Both the position numbers and the translations under genes were made by a program. A stretch of 64,000 nucleotides of DNA, taken from assembly GCA_964188305.1 (NCBI GenBank), contig OZ076895.1; one strand, 5' to 3'. This document shows positions 1,128-62,584 of this stretch, one piece after another (within the stretch, counting starts at the first letter, position 1; the number at the start of each line of letters is the position of its first letter). The DNA is from Podarcis bocagei (taxonomy: Eukaryota). The notes beneath the pieces are model-generated. The model worked only from the letters and a program-made list of their open reading frames with translations. It did no database searches and was not told where the DNA came from.

Positions 1128-1662
1128 CAGTGGTGCCTCGCAAGACGAAATTAATTCGTTCCGCAAGTTTTTTCTTCTTGCGAGTTTTTCGTCTTGCGAA
1201 GCACGGTTTCCCATAGGAATGCATTGAAAATCAATCAATGCGTTCCTATGGAGACCGTCCGGCGACAGAGGGGAAGCGCCGCTCTGTCCCCTCTTTTGAA
1301 GCAAGGGGCTGCGGGGAGAAGATAGCTTCTCCCCGCAGCCCCTTGCTTCAAAAGAGGGAAGCGCTTCCCGCTGTCCCCGGACCTGGGGCTGCAGGGAGAA
1401 GATCGCTTCTTCCCCGCTGTCCCCAGACCTCTTTTGAAGCAAGGGGCTGCAGAGAGATCGCTTCTCCACGCCGCCCCTTGCTTCAAAAGAGGTCCGGGGA
1501 CAGCGAGGAAGACCCACTGTCCCCGGAGCTTGCGGGGCAAGCTTCGTTTTGCGAAGCAAGCCCATAGGGAAATTCGTCTTGCGAGGCAACTCGAAAACGA
1601 AAAAACCTTTCGTTTTGCGAGTTTTTCGTCTTGCGAGGCGTTCGTCTTGCGGGGTACCACTG
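1128..1662. mobile_element. Tc1/mariner-pogo-type MITE (CGCAAGACGAA family) with internal hairpin modules
   Basis: TIR CAGTGGTGCCTCGCAAGACGAA / TTCGTCTTGCGGGGTACCACTG flanked by TA. Same termini as 53027 and 57971, in the opposite orientation. Confidence 0.9.
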
Positions 1663-9929: not shown

Positions 9930-10399
9930 ATGATGAATAGAATTAGGAAGCCTCGTGTCATCTATACCAGGGTGTGTGTTTCCTGTAATTTTGGACATCT
10001 GTAACACATTGGAACCATGCAGTGGATCACTGTCCATCCTACTTCCAGACACAGATCCAGAAAGTCCTGGTGCAGGTCTATATATAACACAGGCATGGAC
10101 CTTCAAACAAACTGGGCACAGTGTTTTTGTATGATGTCTGGCGAAAGACAGGCAGGATTCTCCTCCAGACGTGAACATCATTTCCCTGTTACCTCAACTT
10201 TTATTTGAACTCCGTGTGTGCAGCTGACCCACATAGAACATGGAAGCCACCCAGCTATAATGCACCCGCATGACCAAACAGTTTAGGACTGGGCTAGCGA
10301 CGTCGATGGAGAATAAAACGGATTTAAAGGCTGAGCACCACCACGCTTTTATACATATGATCTCTAATATAAACGGCAGCTCTTCACTTTGTCCCTCAC

Positions 10400-12900
10400 C
10401 CCCTTCCTCTCACGCACACGCTGCCGCGAGGCTCCGCAAAAGCAACTGCTCTGGCAAGGCGAGGAAGTGACTAAACACGAAGCAGCAGCACGCGTCGTCA
10501 TCTTCGTTCTGACAGGGAGGACATGACAGGCGGCAGAGCGAGAGATCCGGTCTCTCCCAGCGCCCCCTCCCCCGATCATCATCATCATCATCAAGTGTCA
10601 GTGACGGAAATCGGTCGCCTCTCCCTCCTCCGTGGTCTCTGTCTGTAAATGCCGGCCCTCTGAGGGAACGTCGTGTGCATTAGCTTGTGTGAACTGCCTT
10701 CTAACCCCTTCAGGCCCACCTCCCGCTCCTCCCTAAGACGGCCCATCGCTCAGGCACGTCGAAGTCTCGTCTCTCGTACTGTCATTTCAATCGCAGACGC
10801 CGCTCGGAAGGGCGAACGGCCGCCGCTCGGGGTTTTCTCTGCGGTCTCCTCGAGGGCGCACGTTTCGCGCTCGCGAGCTGACAAACGGTGACCTCCGCCT
10901 CCTTTGGCAGTTGGGTCTTCTAACCGCCCCTCCCCCCGCTTCCCCCCCAAATCCTCCTCTACACACCCCTCGCCTTTCCCAGCCTGAAGTGAGTCTACGG
11001 CCAGAGCGACCCGCGCGGGCGCCAGACGACCCCCTGCCCGCAGTTTGTGGGGTGGGGGTGGCCCAATGGAGCAGGGGGGGAGGCGGGGACGTGCAAGTGA
11101 GGTGGAAGAGGAGGGGCAAAAGCGCCTTAGCCTCCCCCCACCCCTCCCCAGGGAGACGCTCGTGGCAAAGTCAACGACCCGGAGCCCGCCGGGCCTCATC
11201 AAACGCCTCAGCCCGACCCACATACGTCATGGAAACAAGCACGTCAGGCAACTCCGACCAATAGCGGGAGGTCGGGGAGGCGGAGAAAGCGGCACGCGCC
11301 GCCCCTTCAGGCGCCAGTGCCAATCGGAGGCTCCGCCCTTTCTCTCCCCCGCCTGCCCCCCCCACCCGTGAAGGCGCCGCGCCTTCAGACCCCCGCCTCT
11401 TCCTCCAACCCAAGCGAGACCCTGTCACGTGACGGGGACCGGGGAGAGAGTGTGAGTGTGTGAGTGAGGGGGGGTCGGGCCGGTTCGGAACCTGGTGGCT
11501 ACCGGAACCTGGGGAGGAGGGCTCGCCTGAGGAGAAGCGGGCGAACGGACTAGTAAGTGGCCGACCCTCGCGGTGGAGAGCGAGCGAGCAGCGGAGAGGG
11601 AGAGCGAGCCGGGCCGCCTGTGGCTGGGAGGCGGCGAAGGCAGCGGCTCCCTCCCGCGCGGCATATGGCTCGGCGAAGGGAGCCGAGCGCTGCCCGCACG
11701 CCTGCCTGCCGCTGACTAGCGAGGGCGAGGCGCTGCTGGGGAGCTACCGCGGAGGGCGGGGCAGGGCACCCGGCTCCCTCCTCCTCCTCCTCCTCCCCCT
11801 CCTCCCTCCTTCCTTCCCTCCCTCGCTCCGGCTGCTGCCGCTGCCTCCACCTCCTCTCTCCCTCCCTCCCTCTCTCCCTCCGTCCCCTCCCGGTCTCAGG
11901 CGGGCTTGGCTGGGGCTCGCGCGCTCTGGGGCGGGGTGGGGGGACCCTGTGCAGCAGGCAGGCACTGGAGGTGGAGGCGGCGGCGGCGGCGCTGGCCGCG
12001 TGTGGGGCTTGGCGGCGGCGGCGGCGGACCCTGAGGTAAGAGGCGGAAGGGTGGGCAGCGTGCGGCCGGGCAGCCCGAAGAGAGGACGCGGCGAGGGCGT
12101 CGGACGGGGCACCTCCGGAGGCGCAGGTGGCGAGGCGCCGCGGAGCAGCGCAGGCCAGGCGGGCTGGGGGATAAGCCTGCCGGAAGGAGGCGGCCGCGGG
12201 GTGGGGGTGAGGGGCAGGAGACCTGGGCCCTGCCCGCGCCCCTCCTTCCCACGGGGAGCCCACGCCGGCCGCCTCGAAGCCAGGCGCGGCGTGACCTTGA
12301 GGGCAGCCCGGGAGCAGTGCCTCCGGCCGGCCGCCCGCCCGCCACCTTCTCGCCGGGCCGGCAGCTGGGCGAGGGAAGGGGAGAGAGCTCTCCCCTCATG
12401 CCCCTCCGGTTGGTCAGCGTTCATCTCCCCGTCCGGCGGCGGCGGCTGCTGCTGCTCTTTAGAATGGGCCGCCGGGCGCCCGTTAGGTGAAGGTGCTTCT
12501 TGGTCTCCGGTTTGCTCTGCCGGGCTAAGTAGCCGGGATTACGCCGCCGCCAATGCACGGCATTATCATCCTCGGCAGCCTTGAGCTTCTATTTACCCGC
12601 CCTGCGGGGCGCCCAGCCGCCCGGCCAGCCTCTCTCCTCTTGGGGAAGGGAGTCGGGAGCCGGAGGCTGGCGGCCGAGGGTCCTCCTGCTCCTATCTGCT
12701 AAGCCTGACTCCTTGCTTTCAAGTCAGGGGTTGTGGTTGGGCATAGAGCGGAATGTCAGGCTTCTCTCTCTCCCTGCACAAGCCCCTCTGTGGTTTATCA
12801 CGACGTTAAAGTGATTTACTAATGGCTTAGTTGCATGTGTCGCTTATGAACATTTTGGAAGCGCCCTCGAATGCCGCGTGGGTCGGCGAGGCTGACCAAA
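10400..12900. promoter_or_regulatory. CpG-island promoter of ATP2B1
   Basis: Very GC- and CpG-rich against an AT-rich background. CCAAT boxes (~11063, 11258, 11320), CRE-like ACGTCA (11224, 11241), GTCACGTGAC (11424-11433) and GC boxes. Confidence 0.88.
11880..12035 (+). other. ATP2B1: Probable non-coding exon 1 of ATP2B1 (start approximate)
   Basis: GGC-repeat-rich segment in the CpG island ending in a strong donor GAG|gtaaga at 12036. The TSS cannot be determined from sequence. Confidence 0.6.
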
Positions 12901-15900
12901 CCAGCCTCCCCGGGGCAAGCGTCTGTATGTGAGGAAGGTGGCGTTAGGATTTATCCCATTTCATCGAAAGTTTTCATGACCCTGTCATCTCCGCCAAGTG
13001 GTATGCCTAAGCTTTGGATGTGACCACCACGTGAGTTCATGAAGATGCCTTCACGGTGCCAGTAGTGGGATGAGGTGTGGGATTGAGGGGGAAGATTGCT
13101 GCGTGTACTTCATAGGAAGAAAGCGCTGCCTGTTTGCCACACTACTACCTGCCCAAGGGGAACTTAGATGGGTGACCAGGAATATCTTCACATTCATCTT
13201 CCAGACAGCTGGCACGTATACTTCCTGGATGTAAAAAGTTGGATATAGTTGGAGGAAAAACTTTTGTGAGCAACTTACCTGGAAACTAACTGATAAACAT
13301 TTGGAGTATCTGACCTTGTTGTTGCCAATTTGTACCTACTGTAACCACTCCTAATGTAGAAGACTATTCTGGCAAAGATCCAGTTTCATTAAAACAAGGT
13401 AGGAGGTTCCTGGTTGAAGTACCTATCTCTTCTTGGTCTGCAGATTTGATTAAATTCTGTTGTAAGAGTCTTGAATAATGCCATTTTTCCTTGTGCTATA
13501 CTTATCCCCCACCCCCACCCCTTTGAGATGTTTAAGATAACTGAACTGCTTTGCTCGCATTCTACGAATACAAGTATAGGAACTCAAAGTATTTGCTGAT
13601 TCACAGAGTAGTATGCCTTGCCTTTTATCATTGTAAATCAAGCTTAGGTTGCTCATCCATTTAAGAGTTGGTGGCTGAGACTGGGAGCCTGCAAGTCCCT
13701 GGTTGAAAATTTATCTCTGCCATTAATTCACTTGTTGCCCTTAAAACATGCCTCTATTATTGTAGTCTCAGCCTATCCCTGCCAAAGATATATGAAGTAT
13801 GTGAGGTTAATAATTCTTGAGCATTTTCCAAAAGAAACAGAAATGTAAAATATTACTATGCCATAATCTTCCTCAGTGTGGTTCCCTTCAGATACTGCTG
13901 GACTACAATCCCCATCATCTCTGACCATTGGCTATGCTGACTGAGGCTGATGAGAGTTACTGTTGGATGAAATTCATAGGCCAACACATTGCGGAAGGCA
14001 GCCATAGAAACTGGGGATAGATATGACACTCACGTAGTATATGTATACAACCAAATGCAGATCCTGTGGCAATGAGAACAAAGCCAAGGGTGTCAAAAGG
14101 CACAGTGTAAGGGTTTAGCATCACTATGTAGAATTTACAAGAGATACCATAGGAATACTAGAAATACACACTTAATGTCCATACCCGATGTAGTCTCTTG
14201 GTCTTTTGTCTCCTGGTCAAAACACACACCCCTATTGGCAGTTGATCTTAAATACTAATATTTAGTATTTTTCTTATATTAATGCAGGTTTAGTATGAAG
14301 AAATAATCACACATGAAATAAGTACCTTTCAGTACCTTATGGTCCTTAACATTTTAGAACTTCAGTTCCAATTGTAGAAGTCTACATGATCATCAGATCG
14401 GAAGTGACAGTATTTATGGCGTAGTGGATGCAAATAGAAAAATGAGTTGAAATAAAAGATGGATCAAACTGTTTCTGAATTAGGTGTTGATCTATTTGTA
14501 AAACAGTTTCTTGTGTGGATTGATGCAGGGGTAGCAAATCTATCACCTAGATGGTGTCTTTATGGAGAAAGAGGAGCATAGCTATGTGTGTTGATGCTCT
14601 GATTATGACAAGGGGAGCATTTCATATTATTGATTAGTAGTGCCCCTTCTAATATTATAGTACTACTTTTTCTTAATAAGCTTATTGAGTTTATATAACA
14701 TTGAGTATTGGGGTCCCTCAGTTGTCTAAAGGAGACTGGGCTTGATGAACCAGTAATCTAACTTGGCATAATGCAGCTTCCTAAGTTTCTACAACATATT
14801 TCCAATATGAAACCCCATGACTGCTTCTGGTTAGCATGAACTCACTATCTTTCATCTGTCAAAGTTTAAAACTCAGAATTAGCAAGGTGCATGGTGTGTT
14901 TCAAAAATGACACACAGGCTACATGATATCTATACTTATCATCTCTATAGTTTTTTCTGGGCAGTACCACTGGTGTTGCAAATACACAATAATGATAATA
15001 GTGAATATTTGTACTAAAATGTGTGTTACCTTGCAAGTTGTATTTCTATTAAAATCAAGCCAGAGGGAAGCAGATGCCTTTGCATTTTGCCTCTACTTAA
15101 TGGCTGTGTTCCACAGACTATAACTGCAACTGAATACGCTGAAATCCCATCCTTGTGTTTTGCGAAATTAAGTAATAGCATGCAGTCATTGGTTGTTGGG
15201 TTTGTAAATATAGATTATTTTAGGTGATCTGTTCTGAAATGGTTGTAGCAACCTCATTTATAAATGTTTCACAGGTGACAACTTGAGTACTGTGGCTCAT
15301 TCCGAATGGTTTTTGACATGAGATTAAAAACAGATCTGTTCACAATGAATTTAAATTCTATTTTTTGAAGGAAAAACTTCTAGATTTATCTGTTGTGTTC
15401 AGCAATATTTCTTTTGAAATACTTTACTCATGATACAGTTAGTCTTGGCGTGAAGATAGCAGGTGGTAAATCTTGTAAGGTTCTAAAAACCAGGAAAAGT
15501 GACTCTCATGAAGATTTAAACACTTTATTATTGGGCACACATGTTGGTAGGTTATTGTCCAACTGCCTCGGGATCCAGTTTCTAATAAAGGCAAGAGACA
15601 GTGTTTCTTCTTGGATAGTTGGTAGTGATTGGACTATATATTTTAGGTGTGTAGTGCAAAAGATTAACCCTGTACATATGAAAATGCTTGTTTAATGGTT
15701 TAGTTTGCTTGTTGATAAGGCATGCTGTCCCTTATCCTTTGCATAATAAACCTATATATATAAACACACACACACACGTGTGTGTGTGTGTTTTGCAGGT
15801 TGTAATGGAGAATTTTCCTTAAAATGTAAATATTTTGTATGCTAAGAAAAATGGTTTCATTTTATCTTGAACACTGGAGTTTATGGGCATACACACCTTA

Positions 15901-18689: not shown

Positions 18690-18936
18690 CAGTAGTACCT
18701 CATTTTGCGACCGGGATCTGTTCTGGAGCCCTGGTCGCTAGCCGAAAAGGATGCTGGACAAAGCACACACACGCGGAGTGAATTGCGCTTCTGCCATGCA
18801 CGAAGTGCGATTTAGCACTTCTGCACATGCGCAAGTGGCGAACCCGGAAGTAACCCGTTCTGGTACTTCTGGGTATGCCGCGGACGTTCAATGGAACGGG
18901 CACTTGACGAGGAAGATGCTAGATGAGGTACCACTG
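18690..18936. mobile_element. Tc1/mariner-pogo-type MITE
   Basis: TA-CAGTAGTACCTCAT ... ATGAGGTACCACTG-TA. Confidence 0.85.
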
Positions 18937-26333: not shown

Positions 26334-26403
26334 ACCATGCAATCCTATAGGCTGTTTCTCAGACCTTTACCATGCAATCCTATAGGCTGTTTCTCAGACC
26401 TTT
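26334..26403. repeat. Perfect 35-bp tandem duplication
   Basis: accatgcaatcctataggctgtttctcagaccttt x2. Confidence 0.95.
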
Positions 26404-26883
26404 ACCAAAATGCCTACCATTAAAGACATAAGAACCAAAACCAAAACATCATCTAGTTCAACATCTTGTTCTCACAGTGATCAGCTAGATGCCTATGGGA
26501 AAGGTGGATGAAGAGAGGGGAAAGAGTTAAATAGTCTCTAGCCTTGGCAGTCTGAGCAGAGAAAGGCAAGAGGATGGGGTGTTGGGAGGGCATTTTTTTT
26601 AAAAAAGTGGAACTTTGCAGAGGAAATCTACATAGAACAACATGCAATATCTCACTCTAATCATACCATTAGTTACCTATAGAAAAAGTCTCTTGCTGTG
26701 ATAAAATATAATGTTATCACTCTTGAGGTTATGTTTAAATCTGGTACAAACAACACACTTGTATACATGAATTTACTGGCTGCTGTTACCACTTCAAAAT
26801 ATTGTTTAGCTTGGTAGGGGAAAAAATAGGAAGTCACCAACACAGAAGTTTCAAGCTGTACTGTAGTGTAAAACTTCATTATA

Positions 26884-27125
26884 CAGTGGTACCTCGGGTT
26901 AAGTACTTAATTTGTTCCGGAGTTCCGTTCTTAACCTGAAACTGTTCTTAACCTGAAGCACCACTTTAGCTAATGGGGCCTCCTGCTGCTGCCGCGCCGC
27001 TGGAGCACAATTTCTGTTCTCATCCTAAAGCAAAGTTCTTAACCTGAAGCACTATTTCTGGGTTAGCGGAGTCTGTAACCTGAAGGGTATGTAACCTGAA
27101 AGGTATGTAACCAGAGGTACCACTG
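26884..27125. mobile_element. Tc1/mariner-pogo-type MITE
   Basis: TA-CAGTGGTACCTCGGGTTA ... TAACCAGAGGTACCACTG-TA. Confidence 0.88.
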
Positions 27126-44271: not shown

Positions 44272-44523
44272 CAGTGGTACCTTGGTTTAAGAACAGCCTA
44301 GTTTATGAACAACGTGGATTAAGAACGCTGCAAACCCAGAAGTAGGTGTTTTTGTTTGTGAACTTTGCCTTGGAAGCAGGACATGTTCCGCTTCCTGTTG
44401 AGTGTGTTCCATTTGTAAATTGAGTCCCCTGCTGCTATGGGAAAGCACGCCTTGGTTTAAGAACACTTTGGTTTAAGAACGGACTTCCGGAATGGATTAA
44501 GTTCGTAAACCAAGGTACCACTG
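44272..44523. mobile_element. Tc1/mariner-pogo-type MITE
   Basis: TA-CAGTGGTACCTTGGTTTA ... TAAACCAAGGTACCACTG-TA. Confidence 0.88.
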
Positions 44524-53026: not shown

Positions 53027-53256
53027 CAGTGGTGCCCCGCAAGACGAATGCCTCGCAAGACAAAAAACTCGCTAGACGAAAGGTTTTTTCATTCGCGATT
53101 TGCCTCGCAAGACGAATTCCCCTATGGGCTTGCTTCGCAAGACGAAAACGTCTTGCGACTTTGTTAAACCGTTTAAACCGTGCTTCGCAAGAAGAAAAAT
53201 TCGTTAGACGGCAAAAATTGCGGAACGAATTAATTTCGTCTTGCGGGGCACCACTG
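53027..53256. mobile_element. Tc1/mariner-pogo-type MITE (CGCAAGACGAA family), minimal form
   Basis: TA-CAGTGGTGCCCCGCAAGACGAA ... TTCGTCTTGCGGGGCACCACTG-TA; perfect 22-bp TIR. Confidence 0.92.
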
Positions 53257-57132: not shown

Positions 57133-57966
57133 CAGTGGTACCTTGGTTCTCGGACTTAATCGGTTCTAGAAGTCTGTTCCAAAACCAAAGCATTCCAAAA
57201 CCAATGTGCACTTTCCCATAGAAAGTAATGCAAAATGGATTAATCCGTTCCGACTTTTAAAAACAACCCCTAAAACAGAAATTTAACATGAATGTGACTA
57301 TCTAACAAGACCACTGAGCGATAAAATGAAAGCAAAAATAATGTTCTGTACTATAAAATAAATAAGACAGTATTGTAGATGATAAAAATTAAAATTATTT
57401 TTTTTCTTACCTGCACTGATGATAATCATTGTTTGGATGGGGGGCTTTTATACACTTCCGCAGTCACACAATCAATCAATCATAAAATGAAAAACAAGCC
57501 ACAGTCACAAAAATGAAAAAGCCATACAAACAAAAACGCAAAAAATAGCAAAACAAAACAAAAAGCACCAAATATCACCTCAGAACACTGCAATCAGAAA
57601 CGGGAGGCTTTAATTACAATGAGGGGGAGGACTTAAATTAGTTGCGTAAGGGTAAAACAGGATAAAAAACCATTATTATGATGGGGGGCTTAAATTTGTT
57701 GTACAAGGGTAAAATGGGATGAAAAATGCCTTTATTACGATTGGGGGGGACTTAAATTTGCCCCGCAAGGGTAAAACAGAATGAAAAAATCCTTAATTAC
57801 TATGTGGGGGACTCCAATGAGCTGCACAACAGTGAAAACGGAAGCTTAGGAGCACGTTCGGCTTCCGAGGCAAAGTTTGAAAACCAGAACACTTACTTCT
57901 GGGTTTGTAGCGTTCGGGTTCTGAGTTGTTCGGGAACTAAGCTGTTCGAAAACCGAGGTACCACTG
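57133..57966. mobile_element. Tc1/mariner-pogo-type non-autonomous element with an internal ~60-bp degenerate repeat
   Basis: TA-CAGTGGTACCTTGGTT ... AACCGAGGTACCACTG-TA. Confidence 0.82.
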
Positions 57967-57970
57967 TATA

Positions 57971-60900
57971 CAGTGGTACCCCGCAAGACGAATGCCTCGC
58001 AAGACGGAAAACCCGCAAGACGAAAGGGTTTTCTGTTTTGGAGGCGCTTCGCAAGACGAATTTCCCTATGGGCTTGCATCGCAAGACGAAAGACCATAGG
58101 GAAATGCTGGCGGTCGGGAGCAAAGACTTTCGCCCACAGCCGGCCTTCAGAAGAGGACCTCTTCTGAAGGCCGGCGGGGGGCAAAAGTCTTTGCTCCCCC
58201 CCGCCTGCCTTCCCCCCCCCCCCCGCCTGCCCCGGGCGATCTTAAAATGCTGGCGGGCGGGAGCGAAGCGTTCGCTGCCGACCCCCAGCATTTTAAAATC
58301 TCCAAGGGACAGCAGAGAAGTCTCTGTCCCGGGGAGATTTTAAAATGCTGGGGGTCGGGAGCGAAGCGCTGCCGACCCCCAGCATTTTAAAATCTCCCCG
58401 TGTCCCGGGAAGGTTTTAAAATGCTGGGGGTCGGCAGCGCTTCGCTCCCGACCCCCAGCATTTTAAAACGCTGTTCCTGCCCCAGCCGCCCCACTTCAGA
58501 ACGTTGTTCCGAAGCGGGGAGGGGGGGCGGGGACACCTGCCCCAGCCGCCCCACTTCAGAACGTTGTTCCGAAGTGGGGAGGGGGGGCGGGGACACCTGC
58601 CCCAGCCGCCCCACTTCGGAAAGCTGTTCCGAAGAAGGGCGGGGGGGCGCGGACACCTGCCCCAGCCGCCCCACTTCGGAAAGCTGTTCCGAAGCGGGGA
58701 GGGGGGGCGGGGACACCTGCCCCAGCCGCCCCACTTCGGAAAGCTGTTCCGAAGCGGGGAGGGGGGGCGGGGACACCGGCCCCAGCCGCCCCACTTCGGA
58801 AAGCTGTTCCGAAGCGGGGAGGGGGGGCGGGGACACCTGCCCCAGCCGCCCCACTTCGGAAAGCTGTTCCGAAGCGGGGAGGGGGGGCGGGGACACCTGC
58901 CCCAGCCGCCCCACTTCGGAAAGCTGTTCCGAAGCGGGGAGGGGGGGCGGGGACACCTGCCCCAGCCGCCCCACTTCGGAAAGCTGTTCCGAAGCGGGGA
59001 GGGGGGGCGGGGACACCTGCCCCAGCCGCCCCACTTCGGAAAGCTGTTCCGAAGCGGGGAGGGGGGGCGGGGACACCTGCCCCAGCCGCCCCACTTCGGA
59101 AAGCTGTTCCGAAGCGGGGAGGGGGGGCGGGGACACCTGCCCCAGCCTCCCCACTTCGGAAAGCTGTTCCGAAGCGGGGAGGGGGGGCGGGGACACCTGC
59201 CCCAGCCTCCCCACTTCAGAACGTTGTTCCGAAGTGGGGAGGGGGGGCGGGGACACCTGCCCCAGCCTCTCCCCACTTCGGAAAGCTGTTCCGAAGAGGG
59301 GCGGGGGGCGGGGACACCTGCCCCAGCCCCCCCACTTCGGAAAGCTGTTCCGAAGCGGGGAGGGGGGGCGGGGACACCTGCCCCAGCCGCCCCACTTCGG
59401 AAAGCTGTTCCGAAGCGGGGAGGGGGGGCGCGGACACCTGCCCCAGCCGCCCCACTTCTGAACGTTGTTCTGAAGTGGGGAGGGGGGCGGGGACACCTGC
59501 CCCAGCCGCCCCACTTCGGAAAGCTGTTCCGAAGCGGGGAGGGGGGCGGGGACACCTGCCCCAGCCGCCCCACTTCGGAACGTTGTTCCGAAGCGGGGAG
59601 GGGGGGCGGGGACACCTGCCCCAGCCGCCCCACTTCAGAATGTTGTTCCGAAGCGGGGAGGGGGGGCGGGGACACCTGCCCCAGCCGCCCCACTTCAGAA
59701 CGTTGTTCCGAAGCGGGGAGGGGGGGCGGGGACACCTGCCCCAGCCGCCCCACTTCGGAAAGCTGTTCCGAAGTGGGGAGGGGGGGCAGGGACACCTTCT
59801 GAAGGCTGGCAGGGGGCGAAAGTCTTTGTCCCCCCTGCCTGCCTTCCCAGGGGCTTTTAAATCGCCCCGGACAGAAGTCCTCCGCTGTCCGGGGCGATTT
59901 TAAAATGCCGCCCGCCAGCATTTTAAGAAAGCTGTTCCGAAGCGGGGAGGGGGGGTGGGGACACCTGCCCCAGCCGCCCCACTTCAGAACGTTGTTCCGA
60001 AGCGGGGAGGGGGGGCGGGGACACCTGCCCCAGCCGCCCCACTTCAGAACGTTGTTCCGAAGTGGGGAGGGGGGGCGGGGACACCTGCCCCAGCCGCCCC
60101 ACTTCGGAAAGCTGTTCCGAAGAAGGGCGGGGGGGCGGGGACACCTGCCCCAGCCGCCCCACTTCGGAAAGCTGTTCCGAAGCGGGGAGGGGGGGCGGGG
60201 ACACCTGCCCCAGCCGCCCCACTTCGGAAAGCTGTTCCGAAGCGGGGAGGGGGGCGGGGACACCGGCCCCAGCCGCCCCACTTCGGAAAGCTGTTCCGAA
60301 GCGGGGAGGGGGGGCGGGGACACCTGCCCCAGCCGCCCCACTTCGGAAAGCTGTTCCGAAGCGGGGAGGGGGGGCGGGGACACCTGCCCCAGCCGCCCCA
60401 CTTCGGAAAGCTGTTCCGAAGCGGGGAGGGGGGGCGGGGACACCTGCCCCAGCCGCCCCACTTCGGAAAGCTGTTCCGAAGCGGGGAGGGGGGGCGGGGA
60501 CACCTGCCCCAGCCGCCCCACTTCGGAAAGCTGTTCCGAAGCGGGGAGGGGGGGCGGGGACACCCGCCCCAGCCTCCCCACTTCAGAACGTTGTTCCGAA
60601 GTGGGGAGGGGGGGCGGGGACACCTGCCCCAGCCGCCCCACTTCGGAAAGCTGTTCCGAAGAGGGGCGGGGGCGGGGACACCTGCCCCAGCCCCCCCACT
60701 TCGGAAAGCTGTTCCGAAGCGGGGAGGGGGGGCGGGGACACCTGCCCCAGCCGCCCCACTTCGGAAAGCTGTTCCGAAGCGGGGAGGGGGGGCGGGGACA
60801 CCTGCCCCAGCCGCCCCACTTCTGAACGTTGTTCCGAAGTGGGGAGGGGGGCGGGGACACCTGCCCCAGCCGCCCCACTTCGGGAAGCTGTTCCGAAGCG

Positions 60901-61748
60901 GGGAGGGGGGCGGGGACACCCGCCCCAGCCGCCCCACTTCAGAACGTTGTTCTGAAGCGGGGAGGGGGGGCGGGGACACCTGCCCCAGCCGCCCCACTTC
61001 AGAATGTTGTTCCGAAGCGGGGAGGGGGGGCGGGGACACCTGCCCCAGCCGCCCCACTTCAGAACGTTGTTCCGAAGCGGGGAGGGGGGGCGGGGACACC
61101 TGCCCCAGCCGCCCCACTTCGGAAAGCTGTTCCGAAGTGGGGAGGGGGGGCAGGGACACCTGCCCCAGCCGCCCCACTTCGGAAAGCTGTTCCGAAGCGG
61201 GGAGGGGGGGTGGGGACACCTGCCCCAGCCGCCCCACTTCGGAAAGCTGTTCCGAAGCGGGGAGGGGGGGCGGGGACACCTGCCCCAGCCGCCCCACTTC
61301 GGAAAGCTGTTCCGAAGCGGGGCGGGGGGCGGGAACACCTTCTGAAGGCTGGCAGGGGGCGAAAGTCTTTGTCCCCCCTGCCTGCCTTCCCAGGGGCTTT
61401 TAAATCGCCCCGGACAGCGGAGAAGTCCTCCGCTGTCCGGGGCGATTTTAAAATGCCGCCCGCCAGCATTTTAAGATTGCCCCGGACAGCGGAGAAGTCC
61501 TCCGCTGTCCCGGGGTTTTTTAAAATGCTGGGGGTGGGAAGAAAAGCCCTTGTGTCCCCCCCCCCCCAGCCTTCAGAAGAGGTCGGGGGACAGACTGTCC
61601 CCGGACCTGGTCTGAAGTCGGTTTCCCTAGGAACGCATTAATTGATTTTCAATGCATTCCTATGGGAAACCGTGCATCGCAAGACGAAAAAACCGCAAGA
61701 CGAAGAGACTTGCGGAACGAATTAATTTCGTCTTGCGAGGCACCACTG
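57971..61748. mobile_element. CGCAAGACGAA-family MITE expanded to 3.8 kb by an internal minisatellite
   Basis: TA-CAGTGGTACCCCGCAAGACGAA ... TTCGTCTTGCGAGGCACCACTG-TA; subterminal sequence shared with the 1128 and 53027 copies. Confidence 0.9.
58476..61340. repeat. 60-bp GC-rich minisatellite (~45 units in two blocks)
   Basis: Unit cctgccccagccgccccacttcggaaagctgttccgaagcggggagggggggcggggaca; interrupted at ~59798-59926. Confidence 0.97.
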
Positions 61749-62584
61749 TATATATGTATTGTAAGCTTACATATGAAACTAATCACCTTCCAGCTCCTGT
61801 CACAATGTTCAGAGGCATAAAGTTCCCCCAAAGCATGGCACCTCTGAACAGTTGAACACTGTTACATTTAAAGAATTGCAGGCTTATTCTAAGTGAAATT
61901 AAACCTGAACATTCCAACTGTCTTCTGAAACACATTGGGATCTGCACCTTAGTATCAAGCAAGACATTATTCTAAATGTGTCATTAGCAATTACGTCAAG
62001 TTTTTAATATTTAATACTAGGCACAGGGAGAGCTGAACTTCATGGGGAACATTGCAGGAGATTTAACCCTTTCTTTCACAGCCACAGTTGAAATGAAAAT
62101 TGCCCCTGCCACCAGTAATGTCAATGGGACATTACTTTTTTCTTTTTTTCTTTTTTTGCTTTTTTTCCTAAGGTGAATGGGGTGTGAGGAAGGATCTTTA
62201 TTGATATAATGACTGGGGAGGGAAGGGTTAAGTCACAGTTCCCTGCATGCTGTGATCCTGGTGGCTATCAGCCCCTTTCCCAACCCTGTCATTTAAAAGA
62301 ACCTACCTGATTTAGTTGCTAATACATTTAGTATGGTTTTAGATTGGTATGCATCCCTGAAGTCCAGAAAACTACTCAATTACTGTGAAAGAGCCTTGTC
62401 CAGCGCAGCAATAAACACTTAGCAGACTTCGCAATTATAAGAGAAATTATAAACAGTCTCCTCTTCATGCTGTTGGTGCAGCAATGCCCTTTAAGACTAG
62501 ATAATTGAGCAGAAGGTCTCATTATCCAAATCTAAAAGTGCTTTGATCTTAGATTTCTAAAAACAACTATTTTTTTATTGGCAG

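Follow-up and report, generated by a model that had tools for sequence, protein, structure and literature searches.

The locus described here raises the question of how a short, non-coding transposon came to contain a long tandem array of hairpins. The stretch of DNA analysed, hereafter the window, is 64,000 nt of the genome of the lizard Podarcis bocagei (GenBank assembly GCA_964188305.1, contig OZ076895.1), and the element in question lies at nt 57971–61748. It is a MITE (miniature inverted-repeat transposable element) of 3,778 nt, the interior of which is occupied largely by 60-nt units, while two much smaller copies are found elsewhere in the window. An initial annotation had proposed that the family possesses an internal expansion slot, which repeatedly generates different hairpin arrays and may disperse them by transposition, making the element a vehicle or nursery for minisatellites. 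The analysis leads to a partly different answer. The element is probably a Tigger/pogo-like MITE with a palindromic core that deletes, rearranges and amplifies by slippage or unequal exchange, mostly after insertion.

The three MITE copies, of 230, 535 and 3,778 nt, share a 22-nt inverted terminus. A pattern search with the degenerate 22-mer gave exactly six matches in the window, forming three inward-facing pairs (1128/1662, 53027/53256 and 57971/61748), and none in 100 dinucleotide-preserving shuffles. TA can be read directly on both sides of all three copies, and the 11-mer CGCAAGACGAA, allowing at most one mismatch, occurs 23 times in the window (0.36 expected), always inside the three elements. 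The common terminal inverted repeat (TIR), the TA on both sides and the subterminal repeats greatly exceed chance expectation, and the grouping of the three elements as one MITE family is upheld. The copies had also been said to differ only inside, but their arms have diverged as well, with identities of 85–93% (Kimura two-parameter distance 0.077–0.163, mean about 0.12) over an alignable length of about 120 nt on the left and about 90–130 nt on the right. The left arm of the large copy is 89% identical to that of the 535-nt copy (nt 1128–1662, minus strand, i.e., in reverse orientation) and 85% identical to that of the 230-nt copy (nt 53027–53256, plus strand).

The large copy begins after a TA target-site duplication (nt 57969–57970, read directly), which together with the closing TA of a neighbouring MITE gives TATA. 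The left 22-nt TIR (nt 57971–57992, plus strand, found by the pattern search) opens a left arm (nt 57971–58090, plus strand) that carries five direct copies of CGCAAGACGAA, at nt 57982, 57998, 58014, 58050 and 58080. Next comes a 117-nt palindrome, H1 (nt 58099–58215), with 58-nt arms that are 86% complementary and a predicted single-stranded DNA fold of −57.4 kcal/mol (z −12.6). It is followed by a chain of nested palindromes (nt 58230–58469), consisting of H2 modules with a 76-nt period and arms of up to 63 nt at 97% complementarity; the last motif of the chain is CAGCATTTTAA at nt 58456–58466. At the other end of the element, the right arm (nt 61667–61748, plus strand) has two direct copies of CGCAAGACGAA (nt 61678 and 61694) and one inverted copy within the terminus, ends in the right TIR (nt 61727–61748), and is closed by the right TA target-site duplication (nt 61749–61750, read directly).

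Between these parts lies the tandem array. Tandem Repeats Finder reports it at nt 58476–61340 with a period of 60, 48 copies and 90% matches. When the units are anchored on their starts, 45 are counted; 38 of these have a length of exactly 60 nt, 14 equal the consensus, and the mean identity to the consensus is 96.9%. The earlier figure of about 45 units of 60 bp is therefore correct by anchoring, but the array is interrupted. Block 1 (nt 58474–59797, plus strand) has 22 units of the hairpin-forming sequence. An interruption (nt 59798–59928, plus strand) follows, which matches the beginning of the right module (nt 61341–61476) at 96% and ends in CAGCATTTTAA at nt 59916–59926. A half unit (nt 59929–59961, plus strand) then opens block 2 (nt 59962–61340, plus strand), which has 23 units and repeats the succession of unit variants seen in block 1. 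To the right of the array are hairpin modules (nt 61341–61617) that are collinear with nt 58161–58370 (about 71% identity) and share homology with the 535-nt interior. They are followed by a 57-nt palindrome (nt 61619–61675), which is 95% identical to that of the 535-nt copy and missing from the 230-nt copy.

Comparison of the three interiors bears directly on whether they are unrelated cargoes. When the 535-nt interior was aligned with the right modules of the large copy, the local score was 27–28, well above that of shuffled queries (10 ± 1.4, maximum 16), and the two interiors therefore share ancestry. The 535-nt interior consists of two copies of a module of about 135–138 nt made up of perfect or near-perfect hairpins. 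The 230-nt copy, which had served as the baseline without cargo, is best read as an internal deletion derivative: it lacks the 57-nt palindrome, and of the two boundary motifs between which the cargo was said to sit, the left one is kept and the right one is reduced to its last 9 nt. A neighbouring MITE of a sister family (nt 57133–57966) gives a weaker match to the region of the 57-nt palindrome, which suggests that the palindrome was part of the ancestral body of these elements.

Within the large copy, nt 58161–58370 and nt 61339–61550 are collinear direct repeats of the element's own module (about 71% identity), so that the array lies between two old copies of that module. Because the interiors are homologous, module repeats flank the array, and the right-hand palindrome appears to belong to the family body, the sequence comparisons favour a single unstable core, rich in palindromes and subject to deletion, inversion, duplication and amplification, over a slot for unrelated inserts. 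An expansion slot receiving different cargo is difficult to reconcile with the significant homology of the 535-nt and 3,778-nt interiors and with a palindrome that is family body, whereas the idea of a nursery survives, in that the tandem array arose inside one copy.

The 60-nt unit has marked structural potential. Its predicted single-stranded DNA fold is −23 kcal/mol (z −4.5), that of a unit dimer −49.6 kcal/mol (z −7.1), and the modules reach z values of −11 to −14.5. Each unit contains a canonical G-quadruplex (G4) motif on the plus strand, giving 36 non-overlapping motifs, all in the array, which are the only plus-strand ones in the window. Five C-run motifs (minus-strand G4) occur outside the element, all within a CpG island at 10.7–12.2 kb. 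The array is 71% GC with a CpG observed/expected ratio of 0.61, and its flanks are 38–40% GC with a ratio of 0.13–0.14. The unit shares with H1 a CTTC(A/G)GAA...TTC(C/T)GAAG stem and a pattern of G-runs. It had been suggested that the unit be checked for occurrence only inside these TIRs, and within the 64-kb window this is the case, no copy being found elsewhere.

The two blocks of the array record how it was enlarged. With gaps of whole units allowed, they align over 1,329 nt with 8 mismatches, an identity of 99.4% (divergence 0.006), and they differ in length by whole units, with two extra in block 1 and three extra at the end of block 2. The duplicated segment extends 131 nt into the right module. 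The 11-nt motif CAGCATTTTAA is found at nt 58456 before the array, at nt 59916 at the junction and at nt 61464 in the right module, an arrangement that is the expected signature of unequal exchange or template switching between short repeats flanking the array. Since the divergence between the blocks is about 20 times below the mean divergence between the copies, the last doubling took place well after the family had spread, most simply at this locus. Three layers of duplication can be distinguished by age: the modules (about 71% identity), the units (about 97% to the consensus) and the blocks (99.4%).

These features can be placed in a stepwise scheme. A transposase acting in trans would recognise the 22-nt termini, and probably also the 11-nt subterminal repeats. 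The GC-rich core of nested palindromes in the family body would be structurally unstable; it would have been deleted in the 230-nt copy and duplicated and rearranged in the 535-nt copy, while in the third copy a 60-nt, self-complementary, G4-forming unit would have been amplified. In a first stage, the unit would have expanded to about 22 copies via replication slippage or unequal sister-chromatid exchange. In a second, an exchange at the 11-nt motif flanking the array would have duplicated the whole block (about 1.49 kb) along with the beginning of the next module. To judge from the anatomy, the process would be slippage at hairpins or G4s, or unequal sister-chromatid exchange. Growth would have taken place after insertion at this locus, and the 3.8-kb product would presumably be less mobile.

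Several points weigh against this scheme. The first 22 or so units may have grown before insertion, in a donor copy, and gene conversion could keep the blocks alike, thereby exaggerating the youth of the duplication. The 1.49-kb duplication is known from the assembled sequence alone. Descent of the 60-nt unit from the element's own H1 is weakly supported, the alignment score of the two (15–17) overlapping the maximum of the null distribution (8.8 ± 1.4, maximum 17). Lastly, no autonomous partner was seen in the window, where open reading frames of at least 130 aa outside the elements had no Pfam match, so that the proposed superfamily is based on how the termini look and on their TA flanks.

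If the array had instead formed in a master copy and been spread by transposition, this locus would be one of many with the 60-nt array. Such dispersal would be in keeping with the large copy, whose termini and subterminal repeats are intact, and with the published precedents of miDNA4 and DTC84 (PMC12628747, PMC3879986). However, the copies had diverged long before the array last doubled, which speaks for growth in place, and the unit is absent from the other two copies and from the rest of the window. Transposition of Tc1/mariner elements becomes less efficient as element length grows, and a 3.8-kb element rich in hairpins is expected to be a poor substrate. Spread from a master copy is considered unlikely.

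A second alternative is that the 60-nt array was a pre-existing foreign minisatellite, copied into the element by gap repair after excision or by recombination. However, the array is bordered on each side by a module of the element itself, the two being diverged direct copies, and at its edges element motifs follow at once, without additional DNA in between. The similarity of the unit to the element's own modules is borderline, as a foreign origin would predict, yet unit and H1 have the same stem and G-run pattern, and the window holds no further copy of the unit. For miDNA4, it has been proposed that a tandem repeat already in existence was captured (PMC12628747); for the present element, capture is very unlikely. 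It is more improbable still that the array is partly an assembly artefact, with alleles or mis-joined reads placed in tandem and a true length of about 22–25 units, for although the 99.4% block identity is within the range of allelic differences and hairpin/G4 arrays are difficult to sequence, the join between the blocks is cleanly recombinant, falls at an 11-nt motif and takes in 131 nt of the right module, whole-unit indels separate the blocks at two places, and the window has no runs of N. A nested foreign transposon was rejected as the source of the interior: neither internal terminal repeats nor a target duplication mark the edges of the array, and the modules on either side belong to the element itself. 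Growth of the array within the palindromic core of the element is the reading retained here as probable.

The 60-nt unit contains no stop codon and is divisible by three in length, which is why long open frames, up to 820 aa, run across the array in all six frames, changing frame at units of 58, 59 and 61 nt. A Pfam search returned no domain above the cut-off, and the 820-aa frame, when searched against 1.84 billion representative proteins, a library that lacks this frame itself, matched only unrelated low-complexity repeats at 49% identity or less. A coding repeat protein was rejected as an explanation, given that every frame is open, the frame shifts between units and no domain is present. 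No Rfam family reached its gathering score anywhere in the window. Exact scans of metagenome and viral collections, in which lizard DNA is not expected, matched neither the 22-nt terminus nor a 31-nt core of the unit.

With TA duplications, short terminal inverted repeats and no coding capacity, the three copies fit one non-autonomous MITE of the Tc1/mariner superfamily; the terminus is probably of Tigger/pogo-like type, and the transposase would be of the corresponding kind. The first 12–13 nt of the terminus are common to at least seven other TA-flanked termini in the window. In Anolis, all 17 of the 17 non-autonomous Tc1/mariner families were without similarity to the sole resident autonomous element, and one of them had Tc2-like ends (PMC3014272), so that an orphan family is to be expected in a lizard.

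The sister-family MITE mentioned above (nt 57133–57966, 834 nt) is flanked by TA, has termini of the CAGTGGTACCT(T/C)GG type and is separated from the large element only by TATA. It carries an internal AT-rich tandem repeat of its own (62 nt × 3.2, nt 57624–57813). Its right end (nt 57943–57968, minus strand, including the TA) is identical at 24 of 24 positions to the target-site duplication plus TIR string of the Tigger-like MITE_109 of Rhodnius prolixus (PMC4678618), a comparison of labels and of a 24-nt string only. A literature search by the terminal string returned the Rhodnius table as the only match. Horizontal transfer of transposons between Rhodnius prolixus and tetrapods is known. 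The match could reflect a conserved terminus, shared ancestry or transfer.

Further TA-flanked elements or half-elements were noted at nt 18690–18936, 26884–27125 and 44272–44523, with single ends at nt 198, 9714 and 21652. They have the first 12–13 terminal nucleotides of the main family but a different subterminal sequence. Judged by these ends, several related MITE families populate the window. Just upstream of the element at nt 26884 is a perfect tandem duplication (35 nt × 2.1, 100% matches, nt 26334–26407). A CpG island of about 2.5 kb (nt 10250–13000; GC 0.52–0.78, mostly 0.6–0.78; CpG observed/expected mostly 0.7–1.2) contains long GC-rich open frames without a Pfam domain, and is probably a gene promoter or first exon.

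The value of the locus lies in its stepwise record of the birth of a tandem array within a transposon, from module duplication through unit amplification to a block duplication with an 11-nt junction. The array sets 36 G4 motifs and about 45 strong predicted hairpins, in a block of 71% GC, into otherwise CpG-poor DNA, and is for this reason a candidate fragile or length-polymorphic site, and possibly a population marker. A wider proposal would be that the Tigger-like MITEs of this lizard lineage are a genome-wide, recurrent source of mobile hairpin/G4 minisatellites. We regard this as rather unlikely; were it true, arrays born in the core would be transposed to new introns and would seed GC-rich, CpG-island-like, replication-stalling blocks across genes, amounting to a systematic transposon-to-minisatellite pipeline in an amniote. 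As it stands, the locus leaves the current understanding of transposons and satellites unchanged.

That satellites can derive from MITEs, as the initial annotation stated, is well established, and the general idea has been published for miDNA4 and Xstir of Xenopus, DTC84/pearl elements of bivalves and Tetris of Drosophila. Scalvenzi and Pollet are said to have studied miDNA4 in 2014, and the MITE-derived tandem repeats Xstir/Xmix were reportedly described by Hikosaka and Kawahara in 2004. As summarised in reviews, miDNA4 belongs to the Tc1/mariner MITEs of Xenopus tropicalis and contains an internal satellite whose copy number varies (PMC12628747, PMC9659126). It resembles the present element in being a vertebrate MITE of Tc1/mariner type with a tandem repeat inside the terminal inverted repeats, and the proposal, given in the same sources, that microhomologies next to the repeat drive internal deletions and expansions is counted as a further likeness. 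As there described, the miDNA4 monomer occurs in many copies and in free arrays; here the 60-nt unit is found in one of the three copies in the window, and it differs in being a strong predicted hairpin with a G4 motif. In Xstir/Xmix of Xenopus laevis, again as summarised in a review (PMC12628747), tandem repeats arose from MITE-internal sequence, and a model involving stem-loop formation during replication was put forward. The origin from internal sequence and the stem-loop model are similar to what is proposed here, but in that model neighbouring elements are joined to give arrays of MITE-derived units, while in the lizard a sub-module of one element was amplified and the termini remain single.

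The DTC84/pearl-type MITEs of bivalves have a central array of core repeats between flanking modules with inverted repeats, the repeat variants follow a fixed order, and a palindrome in each repeat was proposed as a hotspot of length change (PMC3879986). Their flanks were called a 'cassette' for internal repeats (PMC3879986), which is the idea behind the initial annotation. DTC84, which may be Helitron-like, differs in that its target duplication is AA, a microsatellite adjoins it, its units measure about 160 nt and their number does not exceed about five (PMC3879986). In the present element the duplication is TA and there is no microsatellite; the units measure 60 nt, number about 45 and are enclosed by 22-nt TIRs. 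The AA target and adjoining tetranucleotide microsatellite of Helitron-like pearl/DINE-1 elements are absent, the flanks being TA and the array having no microsatellite beside it. Of the features that miDNA4 and DTC84 have in common, a central tandem array between TIR-bearing arms is present, and a repeat in varying copy number across family copies is not seen within the window, where the other two copies lack the unit.

Tetris and the Drosophila foldback elements are comparable in that tandem repeats of DNA transposons, with strong secondary structure, can seed satellite DNA (PMC4079207). Foldback elements, however, have long terminal inverted repeats built of tandem repeats; such termini are absent here, where 22-nt termini enclose a central direct array in one orientation. 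Tigger-like MITEs and the TcMar-N families of Anolis share with the present family the TA duplication, a CAGT-type terminus and, as far as the window shows, the lack of a recognisable autonomous partner, and no internal hairpin arrays are described in the papers on them (PMC4678618, PMC3014272). Among squamates, satellites derived from short interspersed elements have been described (PMC10702118). A search of the open-access literature found no squamate DNA-transposon MITE with arrays of this kind, which is weak evidence. Repeat-carrying transposons of this kind are already known, and the element is a clear and datable representative from a lizard, unsurprising to a specialist, which extends to an amniote what has been recorded chiefly in frogs, bivalves and insects.

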